Shown here: positions 13,649 through 64,000 of the stretch, piece by piece | Layout of the letters: the number at the start of each line of letters is the position of its first letter | How positions within the stretch are numbered: position 1 is the first letter of the stretch | Program-made: the position numbers and the translations under genes | Notes under the pieces: generated by a model | Told to the model about the DNA's origin: nothing | What the model saw: the letters and a program-made list of their open reading frames with translations, nothing else | Database searches by the model: none | Origin: Hyaloraphidium curvatum SAG 235-1 | Taxonomy: Eukaryota; Fungi; Monoblepharomycota | Direction of reading: 5' to 3' | DNA: 64,000 nt | NCBI GenBank assembly: GCA_025558095.1 | Contig: JAIVFI010000036.1 | Location: 434,001 to 498,000, forward strand

Positions 13649-14167
13649 TCACCTAACCCGGGCCTCCATCATGACCGGCCTCCAGCTGAACCTCCTGCTC
13701 GCCGAGCTGCTCCCGCTGGCCCCGCTGTCCGCGCTCCCGGCGCTGTTCCCGGACCGAGCCGAGTCCCCGCTCCCCGCCGGCCCGAAGAGCAGCGGGTCCG
13801 TGAACTCGGTGAGGTCCGTCTCGACGTCCGAATCGTCGTCCCCCTCCCACGTGGGGAGAGGGTCGGCGGTGAGGCACTGCCAGCAGCAGCCCTCCCAGCC
13901 GCCGCCGTGCCCGCACGGGTCGGTTGGTGCCGGCCGCGGCCGCTGCCGTCTGCGGCACCGCGAGAGCGGCACCGAGTCCAGCGCCAGCTTCAGCGGGCCG
14001 AGAGGCAGCTGTGGCGGCAGTCTGCGTGTGGCGGAGATGGGGGCGGCGGCGGCGGGCGAGGGCGGGGATGCGTGCGGCGGGCGCGAGGACGACGCGGTCG
14101 GTGGTCGGCGCGCCGCGGGCGGCCACGAAAGGCGGGGCGACGGCGCGGCCGCGGCGGGCGGCGCCAT
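13649..14167 (-). CDS. Small low-complexity protein with CGH..CCWQC motif (family member A; no clear RVxF string)
   Basis: ATG at 14167 in ORF 13649-14728; PCGHGGGWEGCCWQC, acidic patch, Ser-rich tail. Confidence 0.6.
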   Translation of the reverse strand: MAPPAAAAPSPRLSWPPAARRPPTASSSRPPHASPPSPAAAAPISATRRLPPQLPLGPLKLALDSVPLSRCRRRQRPRPAPTDPCGHGGGWEGCCWQCLTADPLPTWEGDDDSDVETDLTEFTDPLLFGPAGSGDSARSGNSAGSADSGASGSSSASRRFSWRPVMMEARVR

Positions 14168-14989
14168 GTCCGCGCTGTGGTGCTGTGATTGGAGTTCCAT
14201 TCTGCGGTGGTTTCGGTGTATGATTTGGGTGGTGTTGCGAGGCGGGAACCGGGTGGCCGGGAAGTCTATCGCGTCCCATCTCCAGCCGCGTCCCAGCGGG
14301 TCCCAACTTTCGGGACAGGTGGCGGTGAGCTCGCCCCGTGCCGCCGCGCACTCCGACCCCGGCAGCAGTTGATTAGCTATTTGTACCTTCCGGGCGGCCG
14401 GGTGGGAGGGCTCCCCGTGCATTTCCTGCTGAAGGGGGTTGTGCCGACGCGCCGGGTTCCCGCCGCAGTGCCGCCCGGCACCGCTTGGCCGCCGGCTGAC
14501 TCGACGTGCCGAGCGCGGTCGGCCCTCGCCATCCGGAAAACCAGTGGGGGGAAACTGGAACCGCCCATCTCCAAACGATCGGGACCCCGGGTCGTGCTGG
14601 GAACGGAACCATGGCTGCGCCCGATGCGAGCGTCCCCGTTCGCCACCGCCGTCCGGAAAGCGACCCTGCGGGACCCGGTCCCAAAAGGCGGCGTCCCTAG
14701 TGATCGGCGGTCGGGGCTTAACTCGCACCCCGCCACCTCAATTGGCCGGCGACGTCCGCTCTATGGCCGATTCGCACAGTCTTCCCGCTCACACTGCCGC
14801 ACCCGCGGCCGCCCCCTCTAGCAGCATCCATCGTTCCTCACAGCGTCCCCGGGCACGGATTCCCGCGCAGCCTCCGAAGCACCGCCCCCGCGACCGCCAG
14901 CCCGCGGAGCTCCTCCTGCCCGCTGCCGCTAAGCCGCCTTTCTCCAGCAGAGTTGCATCACCGGCCGGCGACAGCACCGGCCCCGCTCC

Positions 14990-15850
14990 TCAGATCGTCC
15001 CCCGCCGCGGTATCGCCCGCAGCTTCCCGAGCACCGCGCCGACGACCTCCAGCCCCCGCAGACGGGCCTTCCCCCCGTTCCGTCCCCTGCTAGGCGTCTC
15101 ATCCTCCGAGCTGGATTCGGAGCTTAAGGAGCACGAATCCCCGCCGTCCTTCCCGGCGGGCGCGGGAAGCGACACCGGCACCCCGAACCCGCGGGGTAAG
15201 TCCTCTGCGCCCCAGGTGGCCGCGATGTCCTCGCCCTCGGCGAACGAGACCTTGCGGCGCATCGTCCCGGCCTCGGCGCGCTTCATGGCCGACCGCGGGA
15301 ACGTCGATGGCCTGCCCGGCCCGTCCCGTTCCGGATCCGGATCGGGATCGGCGTCCGGGTTGGGGAGGTGCGGGGATCCCATCTCGGTCCAGCATCCGAA
15401 GCAGAACCCGCCCCGGCCATGCGCGCATGCCCCCTCGGCCCAGGGCGGGCGCATCGGCGGGATGGGGATCGGTTTGGCCGGGGAGATCGGGGCCGAGCTG
15501 CCCTCAGAGGGGGAGGAGTACGAGAGCGACGAGGCCGAGAGGGTCGTGTCCGACAGCGACAGGTCCGAGAGGTCCGCGGAGCCCTGCCGGGGGACAAAGT
15601 CCGGGGGCGGCAGGCCCGGCAGAGAAAAGATGAAGCCGCGGTCGTGCTGCCTCGGCGTAACGGCATGTTCGGGGGTTCGGGGATCAAGGCCGGGGTGCGT
15701 GAATACGAATACGCCCGGCGCCGGGTCCTTCGCCGACAGCGCGCACAGCACCGTGGCCAGCTGGCCCGCCGTCATCGTCGCCTGCCCGGCGCCGTCCAGC
15801 GCGGGGAGCGAGGATGCCCGCGGCGGCGGGTGCGCGGCAAGGCCGGCCAT
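14990..15850 (-). CDS. Low-complexity protein with C-x-H/CxxC motif and PP1-docking-like string (member B)
   Basis: CAHGRGGFCFGC; RSAMKR..RRKVSFAEGEDIAATWGAED. ATG at 15850 in ORF 14990-17224. Confidence 0.65.
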   Translation of the reverse strand: MAGLAAHPPPRASSLPALDGAGQATMTAGQLATVLCALSAKDPAPGVFVFTHPGLDPRTPEHAVTPRQHDRGFIFSLPGLPPPDFVPRQGSADLSDLSLSDTTLSASSLSYSSPSEGSSAPISPAKPIPIPPMRPPWAEGACAHGRGGFCFGCWTEMGSPHLPNPDADPDPDPERDGPGRPSTFPRSAMKRAEAGTMRRKVSFAEGEDIAATWGAEDLPRGFGVPVSLPAPAGKDGGDSCSLSSESSSEDETPSRGRNGGKARLRGLEVVGAVLGKLRAIPRRGTI

Positions 15851-16789
15851 TCTCCGTCTCCCGTTCGCCCCGCTGCGGATCCTCCTCGCCTGTTCCCGCG
15901 CCGCCTTGCCGCGCCCTGCGGCCTGCCGTGCCCGGTATCCTCCGGTGGCGAGCGCGGTGTCCCCGCCGGGCCCCCTGGCCGCCCCAGATCCGATCGTGCG
16001 CGTCATCCGTGCCCTTTGGCGTTGCGTCGGCGGGTAGTCCGATCCCCAAGCCTGCGAAATGGGATCTGCGCCGGCCGCACCACCGGATCCGCGCACGGAG
16101 GGCGGCGGAGAAGCGCGGAGGTGCCTTATCGGAGGCGGGGGCATGCGGTCCGGACGCCGGGGGGGTGCGCGGGGCGAGGAAGATGGAGGATGCGGGAGGT
16201 GCGGAGGCCGCATGTGCGTTGCGCGGGGAGCGAGGATGCAGGCGGGAACCTCGCGCGCCCGGATTGCGGTGGATGCTGGTGCCGCGTTTACATATGTCCA
16301 TTCCATTTTCACACGCCCGGGGCTGCAAGCAGCGGTCCCCGACCCGCCGGCCAGGGACCCCCTGCCGGGCCGCCCGCCCCGCCGCAATCCGCCGCTTCCA
16401 ACCAACCCAACCCTCCCCGCCGCGCAGGCGGACCGGGACCCAAACCAACCGGGGACAAGGCAGCCGATCCATCCGCGGATCGATCCGCCCTTTCTGGCCC
16501 AGAGTTCCGGGGGTGTTTCGGCGCACCGCCCGATCCGATGTCGCCCCCCGCATCGTACGTCACACCCCCTGTCCCCTGCCGCGTGAATCCGCCGCGAAAT
16601 GCGCGCGGCGCGTCGATCTGCATCCATCCTACACGCTGGGGTGCGGATCGCCCGCGCGATGCGCCCGACACGGCATGCGGGCGGGGTCCGCCGGCGCCTC
16701 GGGGTCGCGGCGCCGCAGTTCGAGGGCCAGGGCTGTGTTCCCCAACGACTGCATTCAGACCTCCGCGGGCCCCGGATGACCCGGTAGCC

Positions 16790-17371
16790 ATGGACGCGGA
16801 AAGGGCGGCGCTGGAGCGGCGGGCGGCCGAGCTCAGGCTGGCGTTGGAGCGGCGCGTGCCGCCCGCCGTGTCGTTCGCCCCGCTCTCGCCCGCGGCCGAG
16901 CACCCCGCCGACAAGAGCGGGGTGAGGTTCGTGCCGCTGCCCGGCAAGGGCGTGGAGAGGGGCGGGAGCGATGCGACGCTGGGGTGCGGGCACGAGGGAC
17001 CCGGAGGGGGCGGTTGCTGGGGGTGCCATTGGGCGGGGGCGGGGTTCACCCGGGCGGCGGCGCCGGACGCGAAGGCCGCGGACCATATGGATGGCGATGA
17101 GGACAATGAAGATGAGGAGACGGAGGCGGAGGCGGAGCAGGACGCGGACCCGATGCCGGCGGGGTGGAGGCCGCCCGAGATGGTGCGGCGCTTCCCGCTC
17201 GGCGCGCCCATTACGAGGTCGCACTCGTTCCCCGTGGCTTCGCTGCGCCCGCAGAGGCTGCCGCCGGCGGGCAGGTCGATCCTACGGACCGCGAGCGGGG
17301 GTTTGCCGGGGAGGGAGGGAAGGAGGGTGCGCTTTGACGGGGCCGTGGTGGTGTTTGGGGAGCCTTCGTGA
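16790..17371 (+). CDS. Low-complexity protein with C-x-H/CxxC motif, SILK-like and RVxF motifs (member C)
   Basis: CGHEGPGGGGCWGC; RSILRTAS..RRVRFDGAVVVF. ATG at 16790. Confidence 0.65.
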   Translation: MDAERAALERRAAELRLALERRVPPAVSFAPLSPAAEHPADKSGVRFVPLPGKGVERGGSDATLGCGHEGPGGGGCWGCHWAGAGFTRAAAPDAKAADHMDGDEDNEDEETEAEAEQDADPMPAGWRPPEMVRRFPLGAPITRSHSFPVASLRPQRLPPAGRSILRTASGGLPGREGRRVRFDGAVVVFGEPS

Positions 17372-17546
17372 GGCGCAATGGGGTGAGGAAGGTAGGAGGG
17401 ACGGGCTCTTGTACAGGGGCGGTTGCTGGGTGATGGGAGTGCTGCGCCGGCGGAGGGGACTCCTGGTTGGGAAGCGAAAAAGAGGGCAGCGGTTCAGGTA
17501 TCGCTTTTCTTTCCGGCAACCGCGTCCGTCCACCAGGCTACAAGAC

Positions 17547-18374
17547 TCAACTCTGCACCGCTTCCCCGTCCCACACCGGCGCCCCCTCGTGCGGGAGCAC
17601 CCCCTGCCCCCCTCTCAGCCTCTCTATCGTCCCCCTCCCCCTCGTCCCGCCAAACAGCGCCAAGAAGCTCGCCGGCATCGAATCGCGGCGTATCCGCACC
17701 GACAGCATGCCCGGCTCCGGCAGGCCCCCGTCGAGGTCCGCGTCGTCGTCCTCGGTGTCGGTCCGGTCGTCCTCGTCCGAGGAGCACGAGCTGTAAGAGT
17801 CGTCCTGCCCCTCGCCGTTGCCGTCCAGGTCGCCCTCGGGCGGCCGCACGCCCTCGGGCCACTCCAGCCGGGCGTACTCGTGCTTGCCCCAGGTCTCGAA
17901 CACCTCGACGGCGTCGGAGAAGCGCACGTGCTTCACCGGGGGAGGCGGGGGGGCGGGGGGCCAGCCCGGGCGGGGGATGGGCGGGGCCAGGGAGGGCGGC
18001 AGCGAGGCTGGCAGCGAGAGGGACCGGAAGGAGGGTGTGGAGGGGGTTGGTTTTGCGGGCGGCGGGGCGAGGCGCGAGGGGGAGGCGGCGGCGCCGTCGT
18101 CGGGGGGCCCCGCCAGCCGCCCGCAGGCGAAGCAGAAGCCGGCCGCGTCCGGGGCGGCCGCGCACTCGGCGCAGTCCGAAACGTCCTCCGATGGCGCGGG
18201 CGCCGGCAGGAAGTCCGCCCACTCCGCGCCGCCGTCGACCAGCGTCGTCGTCGACGCCTCGTCGTGCCCCGGCGAGCACGCGGCGATCAGCCCCTGCACG
18301 AAGCCCGCGTCGCTCCGGCGGTACGAGAGGTAGCCGTCCGACCGAGCGCGCGGCACGCCCTCGTCGGTCCACAT
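17547..18374 (-). CDS. Low-complexity protein with CxxC..CFAC and RVxF string (member D)
   Basis: CAECAAAPDAAGFCFAC; KHVRFSDAVEVFETWGKHEYAR; acidic tract. Confidence 0.7.
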   Translation of the reverse strand: MWTDEGVPRARSDGYLSYRRSDAGFVQGLIAACSPGHDEASTTTLVDGGAEWADFLPAPAPSEDVSDCAECAAAPDAAGFCFACGRLAGPPDDGAAASPSRLAPPPAKPTPSTPSFRSLSLPASLPPSLAPPIPRPGWPPAPPPPPVKHVRFSDAVEVFETWGKHEYARLEWPEGVRPPEGDLDGNGEGQDDSYSSCSSDEDDRTDTEDDDADLDGGLPEPGMLSVRIRRDSMPASFLALFGGTRGRGTIERLRGGQGVLPHEGAPVWDGEAVQS

Positions 18375-19313
18375 CGCGGGGGAGCGCGCGGGGTGTTTTG
18401 ATTATTAGGCTTTGCTGGGAGAGGGCACGCCGACCAGGGCTGACCAATGCGCACCGCACCAAACAGGGGAAAGGGGTCCCGCGCGGCCCGCCGGGCCTCC
18501 GCCGCCGCGCCACCCCCCGGCCGGTCCATTGGTGCGCCGCCCCGGGGTTGCCCGCCCTTTTTCGGCGCCGCTGGGGATCTGGGGGGCACGCGATCCCAAC
18601 GGACCCCGGCGATCGGATCGACCCTGGAATTAGGTCCCTGTTCGACGTCACACCCCACTCACACCGTCCAACGAGCTTCCCCGCACCGGCAATGCACAAG
18701 AAACGACCGCCATCACCATCCCGACACGAACGTGCACGGCCGTCCGCGGGGGCGCATCCGCGTGCCCCGCTCGCACGGGCGAGGACGTCCCCGTGATTTG
18801 GGGTTCACTCGAATCGGCGCGTCGGGGCCCGCCCCGGTTGGGCCCGCCCCGGTCGGCGCGGGCCGACGGATCGGGGGGCTTGGCTCCGGCGTGGTCGATA
18901 GCTTTGGCTCGTTGAACGATGATGGGTGCCTGCGGCGGGGGGCCGGGGTGGGGGCAGGACGCCGGATGCCGCCGGTGGCGAACGGCGGCGGCGCCGGGGC
19001 GATAGGATCCCCGGCGCCCGAGCCCGATCCGGTTTCGCAGGCGCATGGGGGATGGATGCGGATCGCCGGTGGGAGTTTCGGGGTGCTGGAGTGAGGCAGA
19101 TGGGACGGAGGGGAGCCCGCGGCGGGTGGAGGGCTCACAGGTGCAATCTGGATGCCTCCGAGGTTCCGCTGCGGGCTTCCTGCCCACACCGGCGAGCGCC
19201 ATCGGCGAGCAGAGAGGGAGCCGGTCGGTGCAACACGTTATCTTACTCTGCCGCCGGCTTTGGCCCATCTAAATCTACCTCCAAATCTCCCGGGTCCGCC
19301 CACAGAACCCCCT

Positions 19314-20086: not shown

Positions 20087-20286
20087 TCCGGGGCGGCGCG
20101 GGGCGGCGGGCGCGGCAGGACGGGGAATAAAGTCCAAAGGGCGGGATTCGCGGTCCGGCGCGGCGATAGGAGGCGCACGGGGCGGGGGGCAGGGGCGAGG
20201 TGGCGGCGTTGTTTTCCCGCGGACCGAGCCGCCCGGGCGTCCCCCACAGGCAGAGCGCCTTCCGATCACGCAACCGTTCCCCGCGC

Positions 20287-22457: not shown

Positions 22458-22788
22458 GCCGGGGGCGGGGTGGCGGGGATGACGGGGAGGCGGGCCGATG
22501 CTGTGCGCCGGATTTGGGCTCGGGCGGCGACGCGCCTTTCGAGGCAAGGGTCCTGTGGCCACTCCGCAGCACAATGGCGGAGAGGCCTGCTGGAACCTTC
22601 GGGCCCCCGGGAAGAGGCAACAGACCGCCCGGCTAGAGCGGATCGGGAGCGCCGAGGCGGCGGCACCGGCGGCACCGGCAGGAGAGCGGGAATCGGGAGA
22701 AAGGGACCTCGGCTGCTGTGTTTGTTTTATTTCGGCCGCCCCGTCAGCTCCGACGGCCCGCTTCTCGACCGGCCAACCTCGGGCGCGC

Positions 22789-24060
22789 ATGCCGGGCACG
22801 CCGGCCGCCGGCCTCATGGAGCGGAACGCCGACTTTGTGCGCGCCCTCATCGGCGGCGCCGGGCCGCGCCCCGGGGGGCCCGCGCCCGCGCCGCTCAAGC
22901 TGCCCGCGGTGACCGACGCCTCGTCGTCGGCCACGCTGTCTTCGCCGTCGACGTCGTCCGCGCGCACCGCGTCGTCCAACACGCTGCTGTCGCTGGGCGA
23001 GGCGTGGAGCGGCGCGCTGCCGCCGACGCCCGCCTCGTCGGCCGCAACCCCGCCCGTCGAGCCGCCGTGGTTCCTCGCCGCCGGCACGCCCGGCACCCCG
23101 GGCTCGCTCGCGCTCGCCACCTCGTACTTTTCGCTGCCGGTGTCGGGCCACCCGCCGGCAGGGCACGGCACCCCCGGCACCCCCGGCACACCCGGCTCGT
23201 TCGCCACCTGGGCAAACTCGTCGCTGCCGCAGCCGCCCTCGGGCCTGGCGCACTGGGGCCACTCCTCGCTGCCGCAGCCCGCCGGCGCACCGAACCACCC
23301 CTGGCCCCAGGCATGGCCCGCCCAGCCCCTCGTGCGGGCGGCGATCGCCGGCGCCGCAGCCGCCCCCACGCCCCCCGCCTCCCCGGCCGCGCAGCACCCC
23401 GGCGCAGGTGCTCAGGGCTACTTTGCCCTGGCCCCGCAGCACATCCTGGCCCCACAGCCGCCCGCGCGCCAGGTATCCCGCCGCATCGTGCCGCCCCCCG
23501 GGACGCTGCTGCCCGCCGCCCCGCCCTTTGCGTGCCCGCTGTGCCTCACGGACCCGTGCCCGCACCGCCGCGCGCAGACCGACCCCGGCCCGGCACCCAC
23601 CACGCGAGGAGCCGCCGACCCCGCCCTCTCCAACTCGCTCCCCCTCCCCGCCCCCGGCTCGACCGCCGCCCCCGCCCCGAACGACGCCCCCCGGGTCTCC
23701 CGCTCCGCCTCGGCGCCATCCGGCCCGCCCGCCGCCCGCTCCCTCTCCGAGCCCCCCGCCGGCCGCCGCCGCCCCCCGCAGAAGGTCTCCTTCTCGCGGC
23801 GCGTCGTCCGGCACGCCACCTACAGCAAGAACGACTACGACCGCACCGGCATCGAGGTCGGCGCCGAGGGGTGGGACGAGGAGGACTGGGAGGGGTTCGC
23901 AGAGAGCAAGGAGGGGCGGGAGGCGGTCAGGGAGGCGCAGAGGGCCGCGGAGGAGGCGTATGCGGCGCAGCTGGAGGCCGCGAGGAGGGTGTACGGGGTG
24001 CAGGGGGCCGCGGGGTGGGAGGGCGGGTACGATTGGAGCGGCGAGGGGAGGGCCGTGTAG
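22789..24060 (+). CDS. Pro-rich protein with CPLC..CPH motif and RVxF string (member E)
   Basis: CPLCLTDPCPH; QKVSFSRRVVRHATYSKNDYDR followed by an acidic/helical tail; GTPGTP repeats. Confidence 0.7.
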   Translation: MPGTPAAGLMERNADFVRALIGGAGPRPGGPAPAPLKLPAVTDASSSATLSSPSTSSARTASSNTLLSLGEAWSGALPPTPASSAATPPVEPPWFLAAGTPGTPGSLALATSYFSLPVSGHPPAGHGTPGTPGTPGSFATWANSSLPQPPSGLAHWGHSSLPQPAGAPNHPWPQAWPAQPLVRAAIAGAAAAPTPPASPAAQHPGAGAQGYFALAPQHILAPQPPARQVSRRIVPPPGTLLPAAPPFACPLCLTDPCPHRRAQTDPGPAPTTRGAADPALSNSLPLPAPGSTAAPAPNDAPRVSRSASAPSGPPAARSLSEPPAGRRRPPQKVSFSRRVVRHATYSKNDYDRTGIEVGAEGWDEEDWEGFAESKEGREAVREAQRAAEEAYAAQLEAARRVYGVQGAAGWEGGYDWSGEGRAV

Positions 24061-26320: not shown

Positions 26321-27010
26321 ATGCCGGACGGCGGTAACCCGCCTTCCCTCTTCCACGTTGTGCCCGCGCCGGCCCCGCCGCACGCCGCCGCCCGCGCGGT
26401 TCTCCCGCCCGCGCGCAAGGCCTCCTTGGACTCACAGGGCGGCGCGTGGCACTCCGCCGCCGCCGGACACGCATCCGAGCTGCTCTCCGCACTCCCCGCA
26501 CCCGGGTCCGCGGGGCGCTGGAGGTGCCCGCACTCGGACCCCTTTGGGGACGCCGAGGGCCACTGCTACCCCTGCCTTGCGGCCCTGGCGCGGCGGGCCT
26601 CCGAGCCCGGAGCGGAACGGCACCGCTCCCGAGCCCGCGGGGTGCTGCGGAGGACCGCCAGCGCGCCGCTGCCGAGGCGGAGGGTGTGCTTCGACCCCCA
26701 CGTCGCGTTCGCGGAGACGTGGGGGCCGGAGGAGTACGATCGGGGGATCCGGGTGCGCTCCGAGCCGCCCGTCGAAGAGGACGGCGACGAGGATACGGAG
26801 GACGACGGGGAGGAGGTGTGCGCCAGCCCGGACTCGGGGGTGGGCGAGCTCTGGACGGGGGTGCCGGAGCCGGCGGGTTTGCCCGATCTGAAGAGCTTCT
26901 GGGGAAAGGACGGGGGGCGCAGGGAGGCCGGGGTGCGGTGGAGGGCGAGGCCGGCGGATTCGTTGGGTAGGATGGGGAGCGAGGTCGTCGGGACTCGGTT
27001 CCACGTGTAA
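26321..27010 (+). CDS. Member F, carrying all three motifs (C-x-H/CxxC, SILK-like + RVxF string, LPDLKxFW)
   Basis: CPHSDPFGDAEGHCYPC; RGVLRR..RRVCFDPHVAFAETWGPEEYDR; GELWTGVPEPAGLPDLKSFW. Confidence 0.72.
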   Translation: MPDGGNPPSLFHVVPAPAPPHAAARAVLPPARKASLDSQGGAWHSAAAGHASELLSALPAPGSAGRWRCPHSDPFGDAEGHCYPCLAALARRASEPGAERHRSRARGVLRRTASAPLPRRRVCFDPHVAFAETWGPEEYDRGIRVRSEPPVEEDGDEDTEDDGEEVCASPDSGVGELWTGVPEPAGLPDLKSFWGKDGGRREAGVRWRARPADSLGRMGSEVVGTRFHV

Positions 27011-44521: not shown

Positions 44522-46537
44522 ATGCGTTTCACGGTCGTGACGTTCGGCACGGAGGGCGACACGCGGCCGCTCGTCCCGCTGTGCCGCGCCCTGCTCGACC
44601 GCGGCCACTCCCTCGAGCTGTTCGCGGACCGCTCGACGCTGGGCACGGCCGAGGCCGGCGGTGTGCCGGCGCGCGGCCTCGCGGGCGACATCAAAGCCAC
44701 GGTCGGGCCGGGCGGGTTCCTGAGCACAACGACGAGCAAGGGCGCGTCGGACCCAACCGTGATTGCCAGGGCCGTCGCCGAGCTCGCGTCGTCAAACACC
44801 GTGTCGTGGCTACGGGACGTCGCCGAGCACGCGAGGAGCTTCGGTTCGGACGCGATCCTCTTCTCGGGGGTCACGGCGTACGTGGGCCTCGCCGCCGGAG
44901 AAGGCCTCGGGATCCCCTCGATCGGCCTCGGCGCGATCCCCATCTCCCCGACGGGCGACTACACTACCCCCTTCATGCCGCCGTTGGATCTGCCCCGCTG
45001 GGCCGCCAGGCTCACACACACGGGGATCAACGCGCTCCTCTGGGCGCTCTTCCGGGGCAAAATCAACGAGGCCCGCACGGAGGTCTTTGGCCTCCCGCCG
45101 CGCTCGTCCAGCTACTGGGACTACCCGATCCTCTGCGGGATCTCGCGGCACCTGATTGCCCAGCCGGCCGACTGGCCCGCCGGCCACCTCATCTGCGGGA
45201 TGTGGCGGGAGCCGCAGCAGGCCGACTTCCAGCCTCCGAAGGACCTCGCCGACTTTCTCGCCGCCGGCGAGCCTCCCATCTACGTCGGCTTCGGGTCCAT
45301 GGGCGGGTTCAACACGGACAAGTTGCTCGCGGCGGTCGTGGAGGCCGTCGACGGCCGCCGCGCGCTCTTCTACCCGGGCTGGAGCGGCATCGGCGCCGAC
45401 CGCCTCCCTCCCAACTTCTTCGTCCTCGAAAGCACCCCCCACTCATGGCTGTTTCCCCGCTGTTCGGTGATTGTGCACCATGGCGGCGCCGGCACCTCGC
45501 ACACCGCGGCCGCTGCCGGGGTGCCGAGCGTCGTAGTGCCTTTCGCGGGCGACCAGCCCTTCTGGGCCGACCGACTCAGAAGGGCGGGGGTGGCGCCGCC
45601 GGGAGTGCCGCACGACAAGCTGGACGGGGCGAAGCTGAAGGAGATGATCGATTGGGCGCTGAGGCCGGCGACGAGAGCCCGGGCCAAGGAGCTGGGGGAG
45701 GCGATGGCGTCAGAGGACGGCGTCGCGTTTGCGGTGGACCAGATCGAGAAGCTTGTCGCGACGGAGCGGCACAAGATCGCGGAGGCCAAGCTGCTCCGAG
45801 ACCGCGAGGAGGAGGCCCGTGCGCAGAGGGCGGCGAGGCCATTTCTTCCTTTCTACGCCTTGACGACGGGCCTGTCGCTGCCCGTCTGGCTCGCGGCTTC
45901 ACGGTACCCCGGCGCGACCCTCATGCCCGGCCTTCCGGTTTCGGCCCTCATGGCCTTTCTCCCGACCGTCGCCGCCGCGATGATCGAGCCTCACGGAGCC
46001 CACGGGCTTCTTTCCCGCTCGCTGGACCTCCCGCGGGCCGTGGCGCACCCCGGCTGGCTCGCAGCAGCCCTCGTGATCCCCCCCGCGATCCACCTATCTT
46101 CCCGCCGCATCCTCGCTCTCCTCGATGTCCCCGTTCCGCCCATCACCGCCTCCCTGTCGACCGTCGCAGCCCTGTCGCTCGCCTTCCTCCCCCCGGCCCT
46201 CGGCGAGGAGCTCGGATTCCTGGGCTACGCCGGCGACCCGCACCTCGCCCGCCACGGGCGCGACGGATGGCTCCTCCAGGGCCTCTTTTGGGCCGCGTGG
46301 CACGTGGCCCCCCTGATGCAGGCCGGCAGGCCTTGGACGTGGATCGCAGCCCACGCCGGGTGCTCGGTGGCGTTCCGCGCGGTCCTGGGGAGGATTTTCG
46401 AGGGGACGGACAGCGTGGCGGCGGCGGCGCTGTGCCATGCGGGGTGGAACGTGGCGTGGCAGGCGGTGCCGGGGTTCGAGCCGGGGTTGGCGGGGGCGCT
46501 GACCGCGCTGGTGGCGGGGCTCATGTGGCGGAGCTGA
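44522..46537 (+). CDS. GT1/sterol-glucosyltransferase-like glycosyltransferase fused to a CPBP (CAAX protease/Abi) membrane domain
   Basis: TFGTEGDTRP, PIYVGFGSM, PHSWLFP, VHHGGAGT, PFAGDQPFW; then GEELGFLGY, GLFWAAWH, HAGWN in the same ORF. Confidence 0.82.
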   Translation: MRFTVVTFGTEGDTRPLVPLCRALLDRGHSLELFADRSTLGTAEAGGVPARGLAGDIKATVGPGGFLSTTTSKGASDPTVIARAVAELASSNTVSWLRDVAEHARSFGSDAILFSGVTAYVGLAAGEGLGIPSIGLGAIPISPTGDYTTPFMPPLDLPRWAARLTHTGINALLWALFRGKINEARTEVFGLPPRSSSYWDYPILCGISRHLIAQPADWPAGHLICGMWREPQQADFQPPKDLADFLAAGEPPIYVGFGSMGGFNTDKLLAAVVEAVDGRRALFYPGWSGIGADRLPPNFFVLESTPHSWLFPRCSVIVHHGGAGTSHTAAAAGVPSVVVPFAGDQPFWADRLRRAGVAPPGVPHDKLDGAKLKEMIDWALRPATRARAKELGEAMASEDGVAFAVDQIEKLVATERHKIAEAKLLRDREEEARAQRAARPFLPFYALTTGLSLPVWLAASRYPGATLMPGLPVSALMAFLPTVAAAMIEPHGAHGLLSRSLDLPRAVAHPGWLAAALVIPPAIHLSSRRILALLDVPVPPITASLSTVAALSLAFLPPALGEELGFLGYAGDPHLARHGRDGWLLQGLFWAAWHVAPLMQAGRPWTWIAAHAGCSVAFRAVLGRIFEGTDSVAAAALCHAGWNVAWQAVPGFEPGLAGALTALVAGLMWRS

Positions 46538-47063: not shown

Positions 47064-49852
47064 ATGCCTTCCCGCGGGCCACGGATCCCGGGAGCGGGCC
47101 TCCTGGCCGCGCTGCTGCTGGCATGCTTGGCCCTTTTGCGCCTCGCGGACGCGTGGCCGACGGGGTTGCCCTCGTCAATCATCGCGGAACGCGTCGCGGC
47201 CGTCGGCGACTTCGTCTCGGACTTTCTCTTCCTCGACGACTCGCGCCTCATCATCGTCGAGAAGCGCGGGCGGCTCGTGCTCTTCCGGGGCGGCGCGCAG
47301 GCCGGCGTGCTGCTGGACCTCACGGGGCGCGTCGCCCCGGCGGCAGGCGGTGCGTGCGCCGCTCCGTCCCTTCCGGCGCCCCCTAATCCCCGCAGATCGA
47401 GGCGTAATGTGCATCGCAATGGATCCCGGTTTCTACAGGGGCCGTCCGTACGTGTACGTCGGCTACACCGTCGACCCGAATCGGAACGGAGGTGGGCCTG
47501 CCGTCCCTCACGTGCTTCGGCGTGCGCCAATCCCGCCTCCAGCGATGAACTACAACATGCTCGCGAGGTTCACTTACCGCAATGATGCGCTGGTGGACGA
47601 GAGGCTGCTCATGGGCGGGGGGTGCAGGCTGGACGGAAGCTGGCAGCAAGGCGACAACTGTTCGGTGCGAGCTCCTTCGCTTCCTGATTTTCTCGCAGCA
47701 ATGACCTTACTTACGCGCCCTCCGTACGTGCAGCCCATGCCCGGCACGACCCACTCGATCGGCACCATCTGGTTCCCCGGCGACGGAGCCATGTGGGTCT
47801 CGGTCGGCGAGGGCAACATTCACGACGGTGCATTCTGGTACGACACGTACGGACAGGGCCGCGTGGGCGAGGCGCTCGCGGTAAGTCTCCTATGATGCCC
47901 AATCCGCAGGAGCTCACCCCTGCCCCCTTTGCCACAGATGGATCCCAACTTTCTCGGCGGCAAGATCCTCCGCCTCAATCCCGACAACGGCGCTGGCCTA
48001 TCGAGCAACCCCTTCTACAACGGCAACGTGTGGAGCGCCAGGAGCAAGGTGTGGGCCGTCGGCCTGCGCAACCCGTTCCGGTGCGCGGGCGGGCCGGGCG
48101 CCGTCTACTGCGGCGACGTCGGCTGGTATACATGGGAATCGTTCAAAGTCATCTACAGGGGGCAGAACATGGGATGGCCTTGGTGAGGTGCACGGTGCTG
48201 TCGGAGAGCCTCTTGCTGACGGGCTCGCGGTTCAGCTGGGAGGGCAACAACATCCCGCCCGGGCAGAACCCCGGCACTCCCATCTGCCAGCGCATCTACG
48301 GCGGCGACAACCCGTACCCCGGGATCCCCGGATCGCGGGGCGTCCTCTTCCAATGGAACCACAACGGCGCATCCTCGGCGGCCATCGGCGGCGTGCAGAT
48401 ACCCTCGTACTACCCCGGCGTCGGCGGCCGCTGGATCGTCGCGGACTACACGTCTGGCCAGGTCTGGGCGCTCACCCCCTCGGGCTCGGCCGTGACCTTC
48501 TTCAGGAATGCCGACAACCCGGTCGGCTTCCGCGTTGGACCGGACGGCTGGCTCTACTACATCAACAACTCGGGTGGCACCCTCGTACGCTTCCGCATCC
48601 GCGGCTTCACGCCCCCTCCGAATCCCACCATTCCCCGGGGCACCACCGCGCGCCCTGTGCGAACCACCAGCAAACGCCCTCCGGACCCGCTGTGCGCGCC
48701 GACCGGGGCGGCACGGATCGTCGTGCCCACCTGCGCGGTCGCCGCTGGGCAGCAGCCCATCGGCGACGTCACGTTCCTCTCCAGGGAGGGCTGGCCGAGG
48801 AGCAGGCTGCGGTTTGCGAGGAACGGAAACTGGGGTCCAGTGGGGCTGGATGCTTCGGTGGGGAGGAGGGGCCAGCCGCAGACGGGGAGGACGCTGAACG
48901 TGAACAACCGGTGGTTCATCACCGGTTGGGGAACGCACTCGATCAGGTGGGTTCTGCTGAGCCGGAAGCCGACGTGCCTGATATCCTTGTCCAGCCAAAT
49001 CATCGTCTCGCTCAACCGGTGCTGCTTCCGAATCACCGGCTTCGTCGGCGTCGACGAGGAGGTCCGCCGCTTCTACCCGCAGTGGAACCTCCAGCTCACG
49101 AACGTGACGCACACCAACGTCGAGGGCTCCTGGACAGTGCGCATCCTCGATACCAACCGTCTGGTCTGGAACTCGACCACGGCGCGCCGCATGCGCCTTG
49201 GGCAGAACCCCATGCCCTTCGACATCCGCAACCTGCAGCGCTACAACCGCGTGCAGTTGGACGCCGCCGTTCCCCCCGCCCTGGATCCCCGCCGAGCAGA
49301 TGTCTGGACCCCCGCGCACCTCAACTGGGCCGAGGTCAAGGCCTACTGCGGCCCGCGCGCGCCCTACGCCCCGATCATCACCATGACCTCCCCGCCCGAG
49401 GGTTTCGCGGCCCAGCCCAACTCGATGGTGCGGTTCTCGGCCCGCGCGACCTACTGGGACCGCCGAACTCCGGTGCCGGCGTCCATGTTCCGCTGGGACA
49501 TCAACCTGGTGCACTGCCAGGGGTTCCTGTGCCACCAGCACAACCCGTTCCAGTTCCAGGGGGTGCTTGCTGGTGCTTTTAACGCGACAGCGCACGATGA
49601 CACCGATCAGCAGTGTGAGTTTGGCGGGCAGGGCGGGCGTTGCCCGGCAGGCTTCGCGCTGGGATGGGACACCCATGAGGGACTCGGCCCCGCCTGACGC
49701 GCAACCTACTGGCCTGGCGATGGACAATGCTGACCGACTTCTCCCCTGCAGACTACTATTATTCGGTGCAGCTAACCGTCCGCGACCGCTGCGGCAACTC
49801 CGACATCGTTCGGCGTTCGGTCAGCATGGTTGGATTCCAAGCGATGCCCTAG
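47064..49852 (+). CDS. Secreted PQQ-dependent glucose/sorbosone dehydrogenase-like protein with NPCBM-like and C-terminal beta domains (multi-exon)
   Basis: Signal peptide; THSIGTI, MWVSVGEG, GKILRLNPDNG, WAVGLRNPFR, GDVGW, NMGWP, GPDGWLYY; NPCBM-like WGPVGLD..GWGTHS..GFVGVDEE; CHQH. Confidence 0.82.
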
Positions 49853-50742: not shown

Positions 50743-50800
50743 CAGACCGCTCTCTTTTTCACTACATACAACGAGAATCACAGACTTGACCTGCCCGACT

Positions 50801-55713: not shown

Positions 55714-55787
55714 GCAATCGATCGCATCGATCTCATCGGACGAGCCCGAGCCTTTGATGGGAACCCTAGCATGTCCATCTATTCCAT

Positions 55788-59009: not shown

Positions 59010-61807
59010 ATGCCGCGCTCCCGTGCCGCGCCGCGTGTGGCGCTCGTCGCGCTCCTCGCCGCGCTGCTGCTCGCGCTCGCCGCGCTCGCGTCCGCCGCGG
59101 AGGTCGGCCCAAACATGAACAACCGGCGGAGAACCACCACGCGCCGCCGCGCGACGACCACGCGCCCGGGCGCCTACCGGGTGGGGCCGCCGCGGGCCGC
59201 CGCCGCGCCGCGCTGACCGCCCCGCCGCCCGGCAGACCGTGAGCGTCAAGCTGCGCCTCTTCGACGACCGGAACGGGAACGGCCGATTCGACGCCGGCGA
59301 CGTCGGCTACGCGAACCGCAACATCGTCATTATCCGGCCGCAGCCAAAGAACGTGCGCTATGTCCGCGCCACCCTCCGCACCGACGCCGCCGGCTGGGCC
59401 CGCGGCAGGATGGTCATCATGCCCAATGGTGGCTTCATCGTGGCCCGCAAGGAGGTGCCCAACGTCAACATCGCCACATTCAACTGGCCCAACGGCGCCC
59501 TGTCGCCCACCCTGGTCGTGCCGCTCCTGGTGGGTTGCCAGACGCGCGGCCGAGCCCCAACCATTCACGCCCTGATCCCGTTCCTTTCAGGCTCCCCGAC
59601 CGGCCGGCACCCCTGTCCGCTTCGAGATTGGCAACAACGGACTGAGCTGCGGCCCGAGCGGCTGCACGATGACGGAAAGCGGCGGAGGTGGACTTTCTCC
59701 TCCGATCCCTGCCATCGAACCCCGTTCACTAACAATGAGAACGCCACAGAATCCTTCCAACCCCTGTGCCCGCCCGGCGTGTCGGCCCCCTGCACCGCCG
59801 TGTACCTCAAGGACTCTTCCGGCCTCTGTCTGGGCGTCCGCAGCGGCACCCCCCGGACTTTCACCCTCGGCACCTGTCCCACCGCGCCACGCCGCCTGAT
59901 GGCGCGGCAGACGATCGACTTCCTCGCCACCCTCGGAGCCGGCGGCTCGCTGTGCTTCCCGGCTTCGGGCGTCTGCATGGGCGAGGAGGGCGACCCCGTT
60001 CCCCCGGCCCAGGCGCCGTCCTTCACCCAGGTTCCCGCCACCGCGACGACCCAGGCGACTACAGCCACCACCGCCGGGCAGGCAACCACCACGGTCTTTG
60101 CTCAGCCTCCGCCTACCACGACCCAGGCGCCTGCAGCCACCACCGCCGCGCAGGCAACCACCACAGTCTTTGTTCAGCCTCTGCCTACCACGACGGTCGC
60201 CCCTCTCGTCCCGACTACCACGGTGCCCCCTCTTCCGCCGACGAGCACGAGCACCGCGACCCCGAGCCCCGTGAGCTGCGCCCGGAGCACGGACTGCCCG
60301 GTCGGCACCTGCGTGGGAGGCACGCCCTACACCGACGTGTCTGCCCAAGCCGGTGTCGGAGTCGGATCGGTTTGCAACGGCATCGGGGAGGGCACCGGCG
60401 TCGGGTTCAGCTGCTCCATCCTCGTCTCCGGCACCACCGAGTGCGGCAACCAGTGCGCGGCGATCTGTGCCGCCGAGAACCTGAAATCCGGCAACCGGCT
60501 CAGCTACCCCAACTACGCCGCTCTCATGTTCAACAGCGGCAACAACGCAACCTTTTGCGGGTGCGCGCAGCAGTGCGGACCCGTATCCAATCTTCCCACG
60601 TACACCACGACGTTCCTCGAGATCAAGGGGATCTGCAACGCCAGCATCGAGCACCGCACGACCTCTACCCTCACCACGGCGACACGCACCACGCGAACCA
60701 CCGTGACCTCCACGAGCATGACCACGTCGACCCCCGGCTGCCTCGTCAATACCTACGCCGGCACCGGCACCGCCCAGAGCTCGGGCGACGGCGGCGACCG
60801 TCTCGATGCGAGCTTCTTCGCCCCCGCCGGCATCTGCCTGGATGCATCCGGCAACCTGTACGTGGTCGAGATGGGCGCGTACCGCGTGCGCCGGATAGAC
60901 AAGACCACGGGGATCGTGACGACGTTCGCCGGGAACGGCACGGATCCCAGCCTCATCGGGGTCCGGGATCTCGGTGACGGCGGGCCGGCCACGGAGGCGG
61001 CGCTCATGACTCCGAACTCGTGCACCTTCGACCCTGCCGGCAACATGTACATCACCGACACGACACAGGTCCGCAAGGTCGACACGAGCGGCATCATTTC
61101 CACCGTCTTCAACAAGGGGAACCAGGGCTTCAGTAACCCCGGCAGCGGCGACGGCGGGCCGGCCGTGGACGCTCGGATCGAGGACACACAGGGCGTCGCC
61201 GCCCTCCCCGACGGGACGGTCCTCATCGGCACCTACTCCGGCGGCACCATCCGCAGCATCTCGTCGGGCGGCATCGCCGGCACCGTTGCCAACAACACCC
61301 CCGACGGCTTCTTTGCCCTGGCACCGCAGGGCACCGGGGTGCTGGTCTCGACCCTCTACACGGTGCGCAACTACGACCCGTCCAACTTCAACGCCTTCGA
61401 TCCCGTGGCGGGGACCGGGTCCTTCGGATCCGACGGCAACGGCGGGTCGGCCACATCGGCGTCCCTGGCGTTTCCCAGGGGCATCGCGCTGGATGCGGCG
61501 GGCAACATCTTCCTGGCGGACTCGGCCAACAACCAGGTAGGTCGCCCGCGGCGGGCCGTCGGCGGCGGGCTGACCGTGTCCAAAGATCCGCGTCATCTCC
61601 GCCGCCAACGGCAACATCTACGCCTTCGCGGGGATCGGCTCCGCGGAATCGACCGGCGACGGCGGGCCCCCGGACCTGGCGGGGACCAACAACCCGTACG
61701 GCGTGGCCTACGATGGCGCGACGGGGAGGATCTACTGGTCCGAGCAGGACGGAGCGAGGATCCGCTTCGCTTCCGGGCCCGAGTGCGGGCCGCCGCCTGC
61801 CTCTTAG
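59010..61807 (+). CDS. Secreted modular protein: SdrD-B-like domain, Thr/Pro stalk, Cys-rich domain, NHL-repeat beta-propeller (multi-exon)
   Basis: Signal peptide; LFDDRNGNGRFDAGD; repeated GDGGPA..L..P.GI.LD.AGN.Y..D. Last exon ends GPPPAS* at 61807. Confidence 0.8.
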
Positions 61808-62451
61808 GCCTTTCGGATCGAGCAAGGAGGAGGATGTCAACAGAGGAAGGAAGCTTCGTCTTGGCGTACCATGAGTATGGCTGTGGAACTATACAATGAA
61901 GCATTCAGAGCCGTGTTTCTTTCCGATATCGATTCCTGGAAGCGGTGGGCGCCCGGCATGCTGGCCAGGGCGACGGTGGTCGGGCCGTTCAAGGAGATCC
62001 ATAAGGCGGCGGGCACTGAACTCGGTATGGTCGTTTCAAGTCGGTGAGGAAGATTGCGAACGGGTTTTGGGTCAATTGGGGCGCGTTCGATGTGCGGAGA
62101 AGGTGTGACTCCGTGTGACTCGGAGGGTCCCGGCCCCGGGAGATATCCTCGTTTTGGCGAGCCGCCGTTTCCACGCACGATCGCGGGATCGTTGCGTCCT
62201 CTGCAAAAATCTGCTCCCTCTCCAAGCGGGGACAGATTGTTCGGAGAGCTGGACGCAGATTGGACGGCCGGGGCGCCTTGGTCCACATCGTTGCTGGAGG
62301 ACGCCGATAGGGCGCACTAGCAGTGAATCGGGGTATCGGAGCCATGTTCGAACTCGGGGCAACTGCCCCACAACCTTGCTTTACATGCCACTCCATTCGC
62401 ATGCGGTCCGACCAAGGGCCTATTGCGCGCGAAGTCAGGCGGCTGTCCTGC

Positions 62452-63123
62452 TCAAGTCGGCACCGCGACCGGCTCCCCGCGGCGTCCCGCCGCCCAGAAC
62501 GCCTTCAGGTCGGGGAGCTTCCCCGCGTTGTCTCCGCGCTCGAGCCAGCCGAACGCCGAGAGGCTCCCCGAGGATGCCCTCCGCGGCCGATCCGGCGGCT
62601 CGGGGCCTGCGGAGAGCGCGCTGGCGGATGCCCGCCTTGCCAGCTGCGCGGCAGCTTGCATCGCAGGAGGTGCTCCCGCGCCGCCATCGTCGTCCGAATC
62701 GTCCGAGTCGCCCTCGGGGAAGGAGGTCGCGAGCGCGGACCCCCGCTCGTAGTCATCCGGCGACCAGGTGGTCCCGAGCAGCACGGTGGCGTCGAACGCC
62801 ACCTTCTTCCGCTGCCCGAGGCGCATCTGGGTACGGCGCAGCGCCGAGCGCACCGGGGACGGGTCGGCCGGCCTCCCCAGGGTCACCTCGCAGAGGCACA
62901 AACAGAGGCAGTGCCAGCACGCGCCCTCGCCGCCGGCGCAGCACTCCGCCTCCGCCGGCGCAGCGGGGGGGAGGTAGAGGTCCATCGAGTCTCGGGCGGT
63001 CGAAGCGGAGAAGGCAGGAAGGTGGGGGTAGAGGGAGGAAGGGGCGGCGCTCGGGGAGGCGCCGAGGAGCGTGCGGTCCGACGGCGCCGGCGACGCGGCG
63101 CGGGGGCCCGGGGTGACGGCCAT
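62452..63123 (-). CDS. Member I: CC..CWHC, SILK-like + RVxF string and LPDLKxFW
   Basis: CCAGGEGACWHC; RSALRR..KKVAFDATVLLGTTWSPDDYER; KLPDLKAFW. Confidence 0.72.
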   Translation of the reverse strand: MAVTPGPRAASPAPSDRTLLGASPSAAPSSLYPHLPAFSASTARDSMDLYLPPAAPAEAECCAGGEGACWHCLCLCLCEVTLGRPADPSPVRSALRRTQMRLGQRKKVAFDATVLLGTTWSPDDYERGSALATSFPEGDSDDSDDDGGAGAPPAMQAAAQLARRASASALSAGPEPPDRPRRASSGSLSAFGWLERGDNAGKLPDLKAFWAAGRRGEPVAVPT

Positions 63124-63673
63124 CGCGGGAAGGCGGGGCGGGTGCTGCTGCAGTTGGTCCAGCGGTGCTCTGTGCGTTCAGGATGAAGTGTTGCGAGTGG
63201 TGGGCGTGCGCCCTTCGTGACGCGCCAGATCCTCACGCGCCCTGCGCCCCTGGCCGACCGACCCTCGAAAACCCCAAAGCGTCGGCGCCGTCGGAACAAC
63301 CCGCTCCACGCTCGCGCTCCCGATCGCTCGCCCCAGTCATTCCGCCGCATCCCACGGACCCCTCCGCGCCGTCGCCCCCCCCCCCCCCCCCCCCCCTCGC
63401 CGCGCGATCCGAGTGTCCCAATGTGACTCGCCGCACAGCCACGAGGCCCCTATGGCGAGGGCCCTGCCGCGTCATGGGCCGACCTCCGTCCGGCCGAAAA
63501 ATACGCAAGGCACTCCGGGGCACTTCTTTGGAGCGAGATATGTGGCAGGTGCTCCGTGCACCGTGTCGGAAAGGGCGCAGCACGCTGGACGCGCCCGCGG
63601 CCATTCCTGCCATGATGCGCCGCCGACAAACAAGCGGAGCACGGGATGTGTCACGGGACCGGGAATCAACGTA

Positions 63674-63711
63674 GAAGCCCAAACGTCCGTGGTGAAGCCC
63701 AAACGTCCGTG
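63674..63711. repeat. 18-bp direct repeat, two copies, 20-bp period
   Basis: gaagcccaaacgtccgtg occurs twice. Confidence 0.85.
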
Positions 63712-63806
63712 CATTCCTGGGCTACATGATGGCATGTCCGCGCCGACCCGGTATCTCCAACTGGCACGCCCCAATCAGGTCGTCCTCGACGCCGCGCGTC
63801 CCCTCA

Positions 63807-64000
63807 TCAAGTCAGCGCCTCCACCGACCTCTCCCTTCTCCCGGGTCCCCAGAAGGTCTTCAGGTCCGGCATCTTCCCCGCATCCCCGTCCTGCTCGAGC
63901 CAAAAGGCCGAAAGCGTGCCCGACGACGCCCTCCGCGGTGTGCACAGCGGGACCATCGTCGGGGAGCTGTAGGCCGGGGCCACCGGCCGGTGCGAGGGCG
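63807..64000 (-). CDS. Member J (3' end only; not in the ORF track), tandem paralog of member I
   Basis: Manual translation PRRASSGTLSAFWLEQDGDAGKMPDLKTFWGPGRRERSVEALT* vs member I PRRASSGSLSAFGWLERGDNAGKLPDLKAFWAAGRRGEPVAVPT*. Confidence 0.75.
   Translation of the reverse strand, partial: PSHRPVAPAYSSPTMVPLCTPRRASSGTLSAFWLEQDGDAGKMPDLKTFWGPGRRERSVEALT

Follow-up and report, generated by a model that had tools for sequence, protein, structure and literature searches.

The window analyzed here, a 64,000-bp stretch of the genome of Hyaloraphidium curvatum SAG 235-1 (contig JAIVFI010000036.1, hereafter C36, positions 434,001 to 498,000 of the forward strand), holds ten loci, A to J, between its position 13649 and its end (Table 1). 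H. curvatum belongs to the Monoblepharomycota, a zoosporic fungal lineage that diverged early. The ten loci belong to a large paralogous family defined by a C-terminal module that, we propose, is likely to dock protein phosphatase 1 (PP1) through a string of the RVxF-PhiPhi-Arg type, the proteins being in that case PP1 regulators.

The ten loci and their shared module

From N to C terminus, the module consists of a cysteine motif, C-x-H-x(5-14)-C-x-x-C, a variable linker of ∼25 to 110 low-complexity residues, the docking string, and an acidic stretch, with P[DN]L[KR]x[FY]W as the end of many members. The consensus of the docking string is [KR][KR]-V-x-F-xxx-V-x-V-x-E-T-[YW]-S-x-[ED][ED]-Y-x(1-2)-R. 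An earlier reading of the window, made from its letters alone (the sequence-only reading), had quoted seven such strings, in loci B to G and I, and all seven were located verbatim, as were the SILK-like elements that it had reported upstream of four of them (RSAMK in B, RSILR in C, RGVLR in F, and RSALR in I). Its description of the open reading frames (ORFs) as otherwise dissimilar has to be corrected, since they share the C-x-H...C-x-x-C motif 30-110 residues upstream of the string and often a C-terminal P[DN]L[KR]xFW, the PDL[KR]xFW tail being common to F, H, and I. Three further loci had been credited with the other family motifs. J is the end of a full member whose RVxF string lies ∼100 bp past the window end. 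A and H carry the Cys motif, H together with a PDLRAFW tail, but no RVxF.

Table 1. Family members in the window and farther along C36. Positions are window coordinates unless marked kb (C36 coordinates); docking-string positions are those of the strings quoted by the sequence-only reading, all exact matches. E values are for the 41-residue profile (m) or the large-family profile built from long paralogs (L). GC3, G+C content at third codon positions.
Locus	Position	Strand	Cys motif	SILK-like element	Docking string	Other features	Profile E	GC3	RNA-type contig (depth)
A	13649-14200	-	CGHGGGWEGCCWQC, 13874-13915		none	acidic/Ser-rich tail		0.90	before 13600 to 14234 (242)
B	14993-15781	-	15392-15427	RSAMK, 15281-15295	RKVSF...TWGAEDL, 15197-15256 (string as quoted, 15200-15259)		m 1.2e-18	0.87	14785-15759 (15)
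C	16790-17368	+	16985-17026	RSILR, 17273-17287	partial, RRVRF + VVVF, then stop, 17321-17356		L 2.7e-5		16739-17455 (404), no joint
D	17550-18374	-	18123-18173		KHVRF...TWGKHEYAR, 17868-17933	acidic tail	m 1.5e-19; L 2e-10	0.94	17494 to beyond 18450 (368)
E	22786-24057	+	atypical cluster, CPLC...CPH		QKVSF...TYSKNDYDR, 23779-23844	Pro/Ala-rich N terminus	m 4.8e-17	0.90-0.97 from about 22800 on	
F	26321-27007	+	26525-26575	GVLR, 26636-26650	RRVCF...TWGPEEYDR, 26678-26743	229 aa, identical to database protein P0215; acidic stretch; PDLKSFW, 26882-26902	L 1.3e-14		
G	28945-31317	+	30967-31014		KRVRF...TWSADEYPGR, 31111-31179	long form; helical body, residues ∼55-673			
H	38891-39460	-	39275-39319		none	tail GELWTG...PDLRAFW, 38906-38926	L 7.3e-5 (Cys region)		
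I	62455-63123	-	62908-62943	RSALR, 62836-62850	KKVAF...TWSPDDYER, 62743-62808	PDLKAFW, 62494-62514	m 1.6e-18; L 3.7e-6		
J	63807-64000, continuing to window-equivalent 64835 (∼498.0-498.8 kb)	-			beyond window end, RRRVAF...TWSADEYERG, C36:498101-498208	last 64 codons only in window; PDLKTFW, 63849-63869; CCAGGEGACWHC beyond window end	3.7e-12		
Further member	499.3 kb					profile match			
Further member	500.7-502.0 kb					profile match			
Further member	502.6-503.8 kb					profile match			
Further member	504.2-505.5 kb					profile match			
Further member	505.8-506.7 kb					profile match			
Further member	507.0-507.8 kb					profile match			
Further member	522.2-523.3 kb					profile match			

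The G+C content of the window, 65-75%, accounts for long open frames on every strand, and the sequence-only reading had itself named shuffled and shadow-frame sequence as places where the motif should not recur. We searched the six-frame translation of the window for an extended string (basic-basic-[VI]-x-[FW], 4-10 residues, [TSV][WYF][GSN], then [DE][YFL]) and repeated the search in 200 dinucleotide-preserving shuffles. Six matches were found, all in the named ORFs, compared with a mean of 0.005 and a maximum of 1 in the shuffles, and the upstream Cys motif gave 6 matches versus 0.025. The bare [KR][KR]VxF was not significant by itself (9 in the window versus 3.6 in the shuffles). A chance origin of the extended string is excluded. 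Frames A to I bear the coding signature of this genome, with a GC3 of 0.81-0.94 (0.87-0.94 for the frames of the seven strings) versus 0.55-0.70 at second codon positions (GC2); every real match lies inside a frame with this signature, and none was found in a shadow frame. A shadow-frame artefact is thus rejected by GC3, by the shuffles, and by an independent hidden Markov model (HMM) built from long paralogs. The upstream portions of the long overlapping frames at B and C have a GC3 of 0.75 and 0.68, respectively, which is no coding signature, so that B and C are two short divergent genes and not overlapping 700-codon ORFs. Locus C stops right after RRVRFDGAVVVFGEPS and has lost the Arg part of the string; a frameshift or an intron behind this truncation was rejected, as no other frame resumes the motif and the RNA-type contig over C is colinear with the genome.

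Transcription was assessed with the contigs of the sole public run found to contain this region, labelled "RNA?", aligned to positions 13600-18450, i.e., loci A to D. Each of the four loci is covered by a contig of its own, two of the contig ends carry sequencing-adapter letters, and depth in the spacers is near zero or zero. Depths that are ∼100-fold apart between neighboring kilobases are not those of uniform genomic DNA, and the run behaves like RNA. The contigs are separate, of unequal depth, and devoid of splice joints, showing that A to D are transcribed and unspliced, in agreement with the earlier view of the loci as apparently intronless and with its expectation of transcripts.

Family size, long members, and relatives

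A 41-residue HMM, built from six window members and run over the 31.9-Mb genome, matched 89 places; 77 of these, all in stop-free frames, passed the cut-off of E≤0.01 in addition to the six training members. Such a scan with the window strings had been proposed in the sequence-only reading, whose count of about 10 loci in 50 kb holds for the window but not as the size of the family, which comprises at least about 80 loci genome-wide, the ten window loci being its visible end. Members that we looked up bear the GenBank name "hypothetical protein," as had been anticipated, and our literature search found no paper on this family, nor on the Hyaloraphidium nuclear genome in this respect, nor on the two sequencing runs with relatives described below.

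The cluster on C36 extends 25 kb past the window end and counts ∼15 string-bearing genes in addition to A and H, all inside the last 90 kb of the 535,027-bp contig. On ten contigs with a known length, 33 of 44 matches lie within 100 kb of a contig end, in zones that make up ∼27% of the sequence; the family is enriched in sub-terminal regions. Examples near an end are C29:588033 of 594,752, C40:474539 of 476,666, and C42:447615 of 457,035. On another contig, C13, three long members lie inside 20 kb (loci L052 at C13:36000-42000 and L053 at C13:23500-26500) and have near-identical strings, [RK]ATVVRFSD[ED][VI]TVHETYSNDEYPAR, suggestive of a tandem duplication in the recent past; within these strings, TYSNDEY comes close to the TYSNEDY of spinophilin. 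The matches inspected on C13 and C38 are ordinary family members.

About 30 members, G included, carry the module at the C terminus of open frames of 750-1000 codons, behind a helical body of ∼650 amino acids. When the body of G was compared by BLASTP with 11 paralogs on other contigs, 10 aligned at E values of 1e-25 to 3e-70 with ∼30% identity, and the eleventh (L032) aligned in two pieces only (7e-11 and 2e-9). An HMM built from G and these 11 long paralogs detects F, D, I, C, and H solely via the module, supporting that the short ORFs are module-only proteins. The commonest long form is a protein of ∼750 amino acids, with a body that we liken, at moderate confidence, to that of Zn-cluster transcription factors, and the short ORFs are its module-only versions.

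Several lines of evidence bear on the nature of the body. No Pfam family, the Fungal_trans models included, matched the body of G or those of its long paralogs, and no Zn2Cys6 cluster (PF00172) was detected in G or in the eight long paralogs scanned, even at E≤1. The family profile nevertheless matched, among 125 proteins retrieved from 1.84 billion representative ones, four that bear PF00172 above the Pfam cut-off (P0195, P0202, P0237, and P0245; profile E of ∼3e-17 to 1e-3), in which an N-terminal Zn(2)Cys(6) cluster is followed by the same body without the module; P0159, a much stronger match to the family profile (E 3e-110), has a sub-threshold Zn-cluster match. The AlphaFold2 model of G, based on a 50-sequence alignment, has a mean predicted local distance difference test score (pLDDT) of 79 and a predicted template-modelling score (pTM) of 0.80 and is all-helical over residues ∼55-673. 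The Cys motif follows the body at moderate confidence, the RVxF region is disordered, as expected of a short linear motif, and downstream of the string comes either an acidic, disordered stretch or a single helix. Foldseek retrieved nothing from the PDB at E≤0.001 with this model. Exhaustive structural alignment ranked core chains of CBF3 first (6P7V_B, Z 10.9 over 389 residues with a root-mean-square deviation of 5.4; 6F07_A, Z 10.5) and Upc2 (4N9N) fifth (Z 9.3), Z values below about 13 not being decisive for helical proteins, since unrelated helical proteins reach them. From its residue range, to 608, we take the CBF3 chain to be Cep3, itself a Zn-cluster protein.

The likely link between the body of G and those of Zn2Cys6 factors (Cep3 and Upc2) is drawn from its top structural matches and from the PF00172 proteins that its family profile finds; G and its 11 aligned paralogs differ from such factors in lacking both the Zn2Cys6 cluster and any Pfam match. 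We conclude, with moderate confidence, that it is a Zn-cluster-transcription-factor-like body without the DNA-binding cluster. To our knowledge, there is no known Zn-cluster factor with a PP1-docking tail. A feature search of the ESM Atlas with the G body returned weak rows resembling tethering complexes or CCDC142 (0.88-0.92, fewer than 170 shared features), on which we do not rely. Of the other database proteins, P0182 (KAI9021313.1), from a contig of 731,982 bp, as long as C17, combines a MYND zinc finger with part of the family body, corresponding to profile positions 182-356, and P0239 (KAI9014037.1), a galactosyltransferase of the GMA12/MNN10 family from a contig of 653,716 bp, as long as C25, has a C-terminal Cys motif and RVRF...TWSKAEYPAR, so that the module, already called modular in the sequence-only reading, is also found fused to a glycosyltransferase.

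The source was checked for 30 profile matches: every named one is an H. curvatum "hypothetical protein," and the others come from public-run assemblies or metagenomes. Homologs of the module occur in at least two other organisms, represented by runs SRR26194948 and SRR23967301. The former, with contigs of up to 106 kb, a G+C content of 53-55%, and a Na/H exchanger 57% identical to that of Hyaloraphidium, has long members (P0139 and P0144) as well as short ones (P0205, P0206, and P0207). P0205 and P0207 share one 26.6-kb contig (L046, logan:SRR26194948_7551), which indicates that local clustering of short members is not unique to Hyaloraphidium. In the latter (56-57% G+C), a long member adjoins a gene with a weak Fungal_trans match. 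The retention of the module across very different base compositions argues for selection and against the short form being debris.

Likeness to PP1-docking regions

We collected 78 distinct core strings from the window, the other loci, and the database matches; they were picked by a motif filter, which makes the following counts somewhat circular. With the Phe of RVxF as position 0, V(-2) and F(0) are each present in 77 of the 78 strings, and a basic residue is found at -4 in 69 and at -3 in 50. At x, the most frequent residues are R, S, T, and A. In their basic, V, and F positions, the strings agree with the RVxF consensus [KR][KR]-[VI]-{P}-[FW], which all six full window strings fit. The hydrophobic strand that follows has V(+4) in 60 strings and V/I(+6) in 62; position +7 is F or Y in 25 (F in 14, Y in 11), G being as frequent as F. 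Farther on come E(+8) in 54, T(+9) in all 78, Y/W(+10) in 75, [ED](+14) in 77, Y(+15) in 77, and R at +17 or +18 in 32 and 47 strings, respectively. Despite an overall identity of ∼30% among paralogs, an alignment of 12 sequences has C-x-H, G-x-C-x-x-C, R-V-R-F, V, T, E-Y, and R as invariant C-terminal columns. This alignment and the independent HMM agree with the counts.

The conservation fits the published PP1-docking code in having the RVxF consensus, a hydrophobic strand 4-7 residues on, and a Tyr-x(1-2)-Arg. The RVxF-PhiPhi-R-W string is documented in Phactr1, spinophilin, PNUTS, and PPP1R15; its Arg binds D71 and N271 of PP1, and its Tyr touches P24 and Y70 (PMC7599070). RVxF-PhiPhi[xF] has been given as a general motif, and the definition of SILK has been widened to G/S-I/V-L/V-K, GVLK binding the SILK pocket (PMC9813921). 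By the published SILK definitions, C (SILR) and F (GVLR) fit, whereas B (SAMK) and I (SALR) do not. An SILK-like element lies within 22 residues upstream of RVxF in 6 of the 78 strings, so that it is confined to a few members and is no family trait.

When a 59-sequence profile of the module was searched against 177,635 distinct PDB sequences, the top matches were spinophilin (3EGH and 3EGG, E 0.0013-0.0014), followed by neurabin-1 (9GSU, E 0.0055, and 3HVQ, 0.022) and, fifth, KNL1/CASC5 (6CZO, 0.029); all five entries are PP1 holoenzyme structures. In residue-level alignments, the two spinophilin chains and 9GSU of neurabin-1 match the module over their PP1-bound stretch, where the consensus of the module model reads rrkrVrFaee.vevfeTyskeeYpar. 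The layout had earlier been likened to spinophilin/neurabin, Phactr, and Bni4; the first likeness is supported by the top PDB matches. Phactr1, Bni4, PNUTS, and PPP1R15A/B gave no PDB match at E≤10. Pfam found nothing above threshold in the seven window ORFs and eight long paralogs. The sole Pfam family recurring among members is PF17817 (9 of 59, all sub-threshold), and its matches fall on the string in the two members with coordinates (profile positions 27-53 and 16-52 of 71). The string of E, the window string nearest to that of spinophilin, has such a sub-threshold match. A word-indexed homolog search returned no match for G, not even G itself, and three Hyaloraphidium proteins only for the module alignment, its index being too coarse for this low-complexity family.

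Compared with spinophilin and neurabin-1, the module has the same order of elements (basic residues, V/I-x-F, a V/I-x-V-F strand, and T-Y-S-x-E-[DE]-Y-[DP]-R) and a disordered docking region that is predicted to wrap around PP1 alike. The fungal members, on the other hand, have no PDZ domain, actin-binding region, or coiled coil around the string in the Pfam scan, their module adds the upstream C-x-H...C-x-x-C and the C-terminal PDLKxFW, and their host bodies are unrelated. The family is thus not a member of spinophilin/neurabin, with which it shares the docking string, and on present sequence and model evidence it is best filed as a type of PP1-interacting protein with an RVxF-PhiPhi-Arg string. 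With Phactr1, Bni4, PNUTS, and PPP1R15A/B, the module shares RVxF, the PhiPhi strand, and a Tyr-stabilized Arg, and the model of F described below meets the same PP1 residues; it lacks, however, a conserved Trp and the RPEL, TFIIS, and eIF2-alpha-recruiting parts. A PPP1R15/GADD34-type string, considered as a candidate, was unsupported by any PDB or Pfam match. Similarity to the SILK-RVxF regulators (Inhibitor-2, KNL1, and RRP1B) lies in the [GS][IV]L[KR] found 8-11 residues before RVxF in C and F, in KNL1 being the fifth PDB match, and in the position of GVLR on the SILK pocket in the F model; the rarity of this element in the fungal strings sets the family apart. Inhibitor-3/Ypi1 likewise combines an RVxF motif with a Cys cluster, which binds the active-site metals of PP1 (PMC10066265), whereas in the fungal module a Cys/His motif of the form C-x-H...C-x-x-C precedes RVxF at varying distances and makes no confident contact with PP1 in the model.

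The complex with PP1 was predicted with residues 1-300 of a fungal PP1 (P0071), a near-identical counterpart of the exon-encoded Hyaloraphidium PP1, and the module of F (window 26501-26902). The interface score ipSAE was 0.94 in each of three runs and 0.00 in the best of three controls; 51 of 78 solved complexes, but just 2 of 108 mismatched pairs, attain that mark. Contact agreement between runs was at least 63%, and the pLDDT of the partner was at least 48. In the model, GVLR (F residues 47-50) meets PP1 residues 53, 55-56, 116, and 166-169; RRVCFD (60-65) meets 242-243, 261, and 288-293; HVAFAETWGP (67-76) meets 293-296, 71, and 74; and EYDRGIR (78-84) falls in the remaining set, 23-25, 68, 70-71, and 269-275. 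Taken together, the modelled contacts (23-25, 53, 55-56, 68, 70-71, 74, 116, 166-169, 242-243, 261, 269-275, and 288-300) cover the SILK and RVxF pockets, strand beta-14, and the Arg site. The complex prediction with the organism's own type of PP1, which the sequence-only reading had suggested, gave a high score with contacts in the expected pockets. Each refuting condition set out in that reading that could be examined computationally turned out in its favor. The contacts modelled for EYDR agree with the published Arg-motif contacts D71, N271, P24, and Y70 (PMC7599070), and the placement of GVLR on the SILK pocket agrees with GVLK being a functional SILK variant (PMC9813921).

The canonical, Glc7-type PP1 gene of the genome is L043 (G000 C3:713397-716510, minus strand). 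Two or more of its short introns keep the reading frame and contain no stop, so that a 236-codon ORF (904-1614) runs across three exons, which lowers the apparent identity of the gene to other PP1s. A PP1-like paralog, L042 (G000 C25:298157-301300, minus strand), has an N-terminal extension that starts with MGQSGS, likely a myristoylation signal, and looks like a PPZ-type phosphatase.

Proposed mechanism, alternatives, and significance

We propose that the V and F of the string would insert in the RVxF pocket of PP1, that the V-x-V(-F) stretch would add a strand to PP1 strand beta-14, and that the Tyr-x-Arg element would engage the C-terminal groove near D71 and N271, with the upstream [GS][IV]L[KR]-like element of a few members occupying the SILK pocket. 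C-x-H-x(5-14)-C-x-x-C would be a zinc knuckle, joined to the string by a disordered linker. In the long members (G and ∼30 others), PP1 would be tethered to a helical body of the Zn2Cys6 regulatory type devoid of the DNA-binding cluster, whereas the short members B, D, E, F, and I, being the module alone, may serve as small adaptors, inhibitors, or competitors of PP1. Loci A, C, and H are partly degenerate copies. The proteins may target or inhibit PP1 or be its substrates.

Several observations weigh against PP1 docking. The PDB matches have E values of ∼1e-3 and the Pfam ones stay below the cut-off, which is weak in absolute terms, and there is one residue fewer between F and TYS...Y.R than in spinophilin. 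No conserved W represents the Trp element that, in the full RVxF-PhiPhi-R-W string, comes ∼6 residues past the Arg; over the 78 strings, positions +19 to +25 are S-M-L-A-P-D-like. The Cys motif and the PDLKSFW tail of F make no confident contact with PP1 in the model, and the predictor may recall the solved spinophilin, PNUTS, and Phactr complexes, its score measuring likeness and not binding. As for transcription, the run is presumed to be RNA, and its contigs reveal neither strand nor level.

Part of this evidence would also suit a module that serves, independently of PP1, as a conserved unit of interaction or folding, such as a small zinc-stabilized domain in which RVRF and the V-x-V strands pack on the knuckle, a degron, or a localization signal, its likeness to RVxF-PhiPhi-Arg being convergent or coincidental. 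Under this explanation, the predicted complex might mirror the memory of solved PP1 complexes. The PDB and Pfam matches are marginal, the Cys motif and the invariant Thr(+9), conserved like the RVxF residues, are unexplained by known PP1 contacts, and no role with PP1 is known for PDLKxFW, which is likewise conserved. We nonetheless regard it as unlikely. The length and low complexity of the linker argue against a single compact fold, disorder is predicted for the string region, all the defining RVxF and Tyr-x-Arg positions are conserved, and the top five PDB matches are all PP1 holoenzyme chains, three of which align on the PP1-bound stretch.

Another alternative is that the short window ORFs (A to F and H to J) are transcribed but functionless fragments of the long family that decay in a fast-evolving sub-terminal region. 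The absence of the RVxF string from A and H, the interruption of C within the string, and the position of the cluster and of most matches near contig ends are compatible with decay. However, the short ORFs hold a strong coding signature and retain the invariant residues of the string, the contigs over C and D are deep (though depth is a poor guide to expression level), and the relative with 53-55% G+C has module-only proteins of 167-265 amino acids with the same three motifs, some of them adjacent, which indicates that the short form has been retained. We therefore hold general decay to be improbable. That the string docks a PP1-like fungal phosphatase such as PPZ, or another PPP enzyme, instead of PP1 is more improbable still: the genome does encode the PPZ-like L042, and PPZ enzymes retain much of the RVxF pocket (PMC8836105), but the fit to PP1, the sole phosphatase modelled, is very good, and among solved structures the string has its nearest relatives in PP1 regulators.

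PP1 derives its specificity from its regulators, and fungi are thought to hold a few dozen of these, from many unrelated families. Here, one early-diverging fungus apparently holds 80 or more copies of a single module. The module occurs in at least three settings: on a helical scaffold resembling that of transcription factors, on a GMA12/MNN10 glycosyltransferase, and as short proteins of its own. Probably, the family amounts to a very large set of PP1 regulators specific to this lineage. Should the module bind PP1, the family would represent a natural experiment in the diversification of a phosphatase repertoire by shuffling and amplification of a docking module, and dozens of "hypothetical proteins" would receive a name. 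The docking sequence is compact and strongly conserved, and its 78 natural variants lend themselves to a dissection of the RVxF-PhiPhi-Arg code. Its closeness to the string of animal spinophilin/neurabin raises the question of whether this docking domain is much older than the animal proteins that bear it. A farther-reaching scenario can be formulated, in which this is the largest expansion of a single family of PP1 regulators yet seen (at least 80 paralogs, near contig ends), the docking domain is truly homologous to that of spinophilin/neurabin, its origin being pushed back to the ancestor of fungi and animals, the long members link PP1 with a scaffold of the Zn-cluster type that senses ligands or signals, and the knuckle is a metal-dependent regulatory element; that all of these would hold together seems doubtful to us.

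Genes of other kinds also lie in the window. Outside the span of the ten loci, positions 8622-10007 (plus strand) encode an F-box-like protein (PF12937, E 7e-10). At 44423-46537 (plus strand), one open frame comprises a glycosyltransferase (EryCIII-like_C/UDPGT) and a C-terminal Rce1-like CAAX protease (CPBP) domain. Also placed between family members are an NPCBM/NEW2-domain protein at 47793-49697 (plus strand) and a protein with NHL/teneurin-NHL beta-propeller repeats at 59239-61899 (plus strand).

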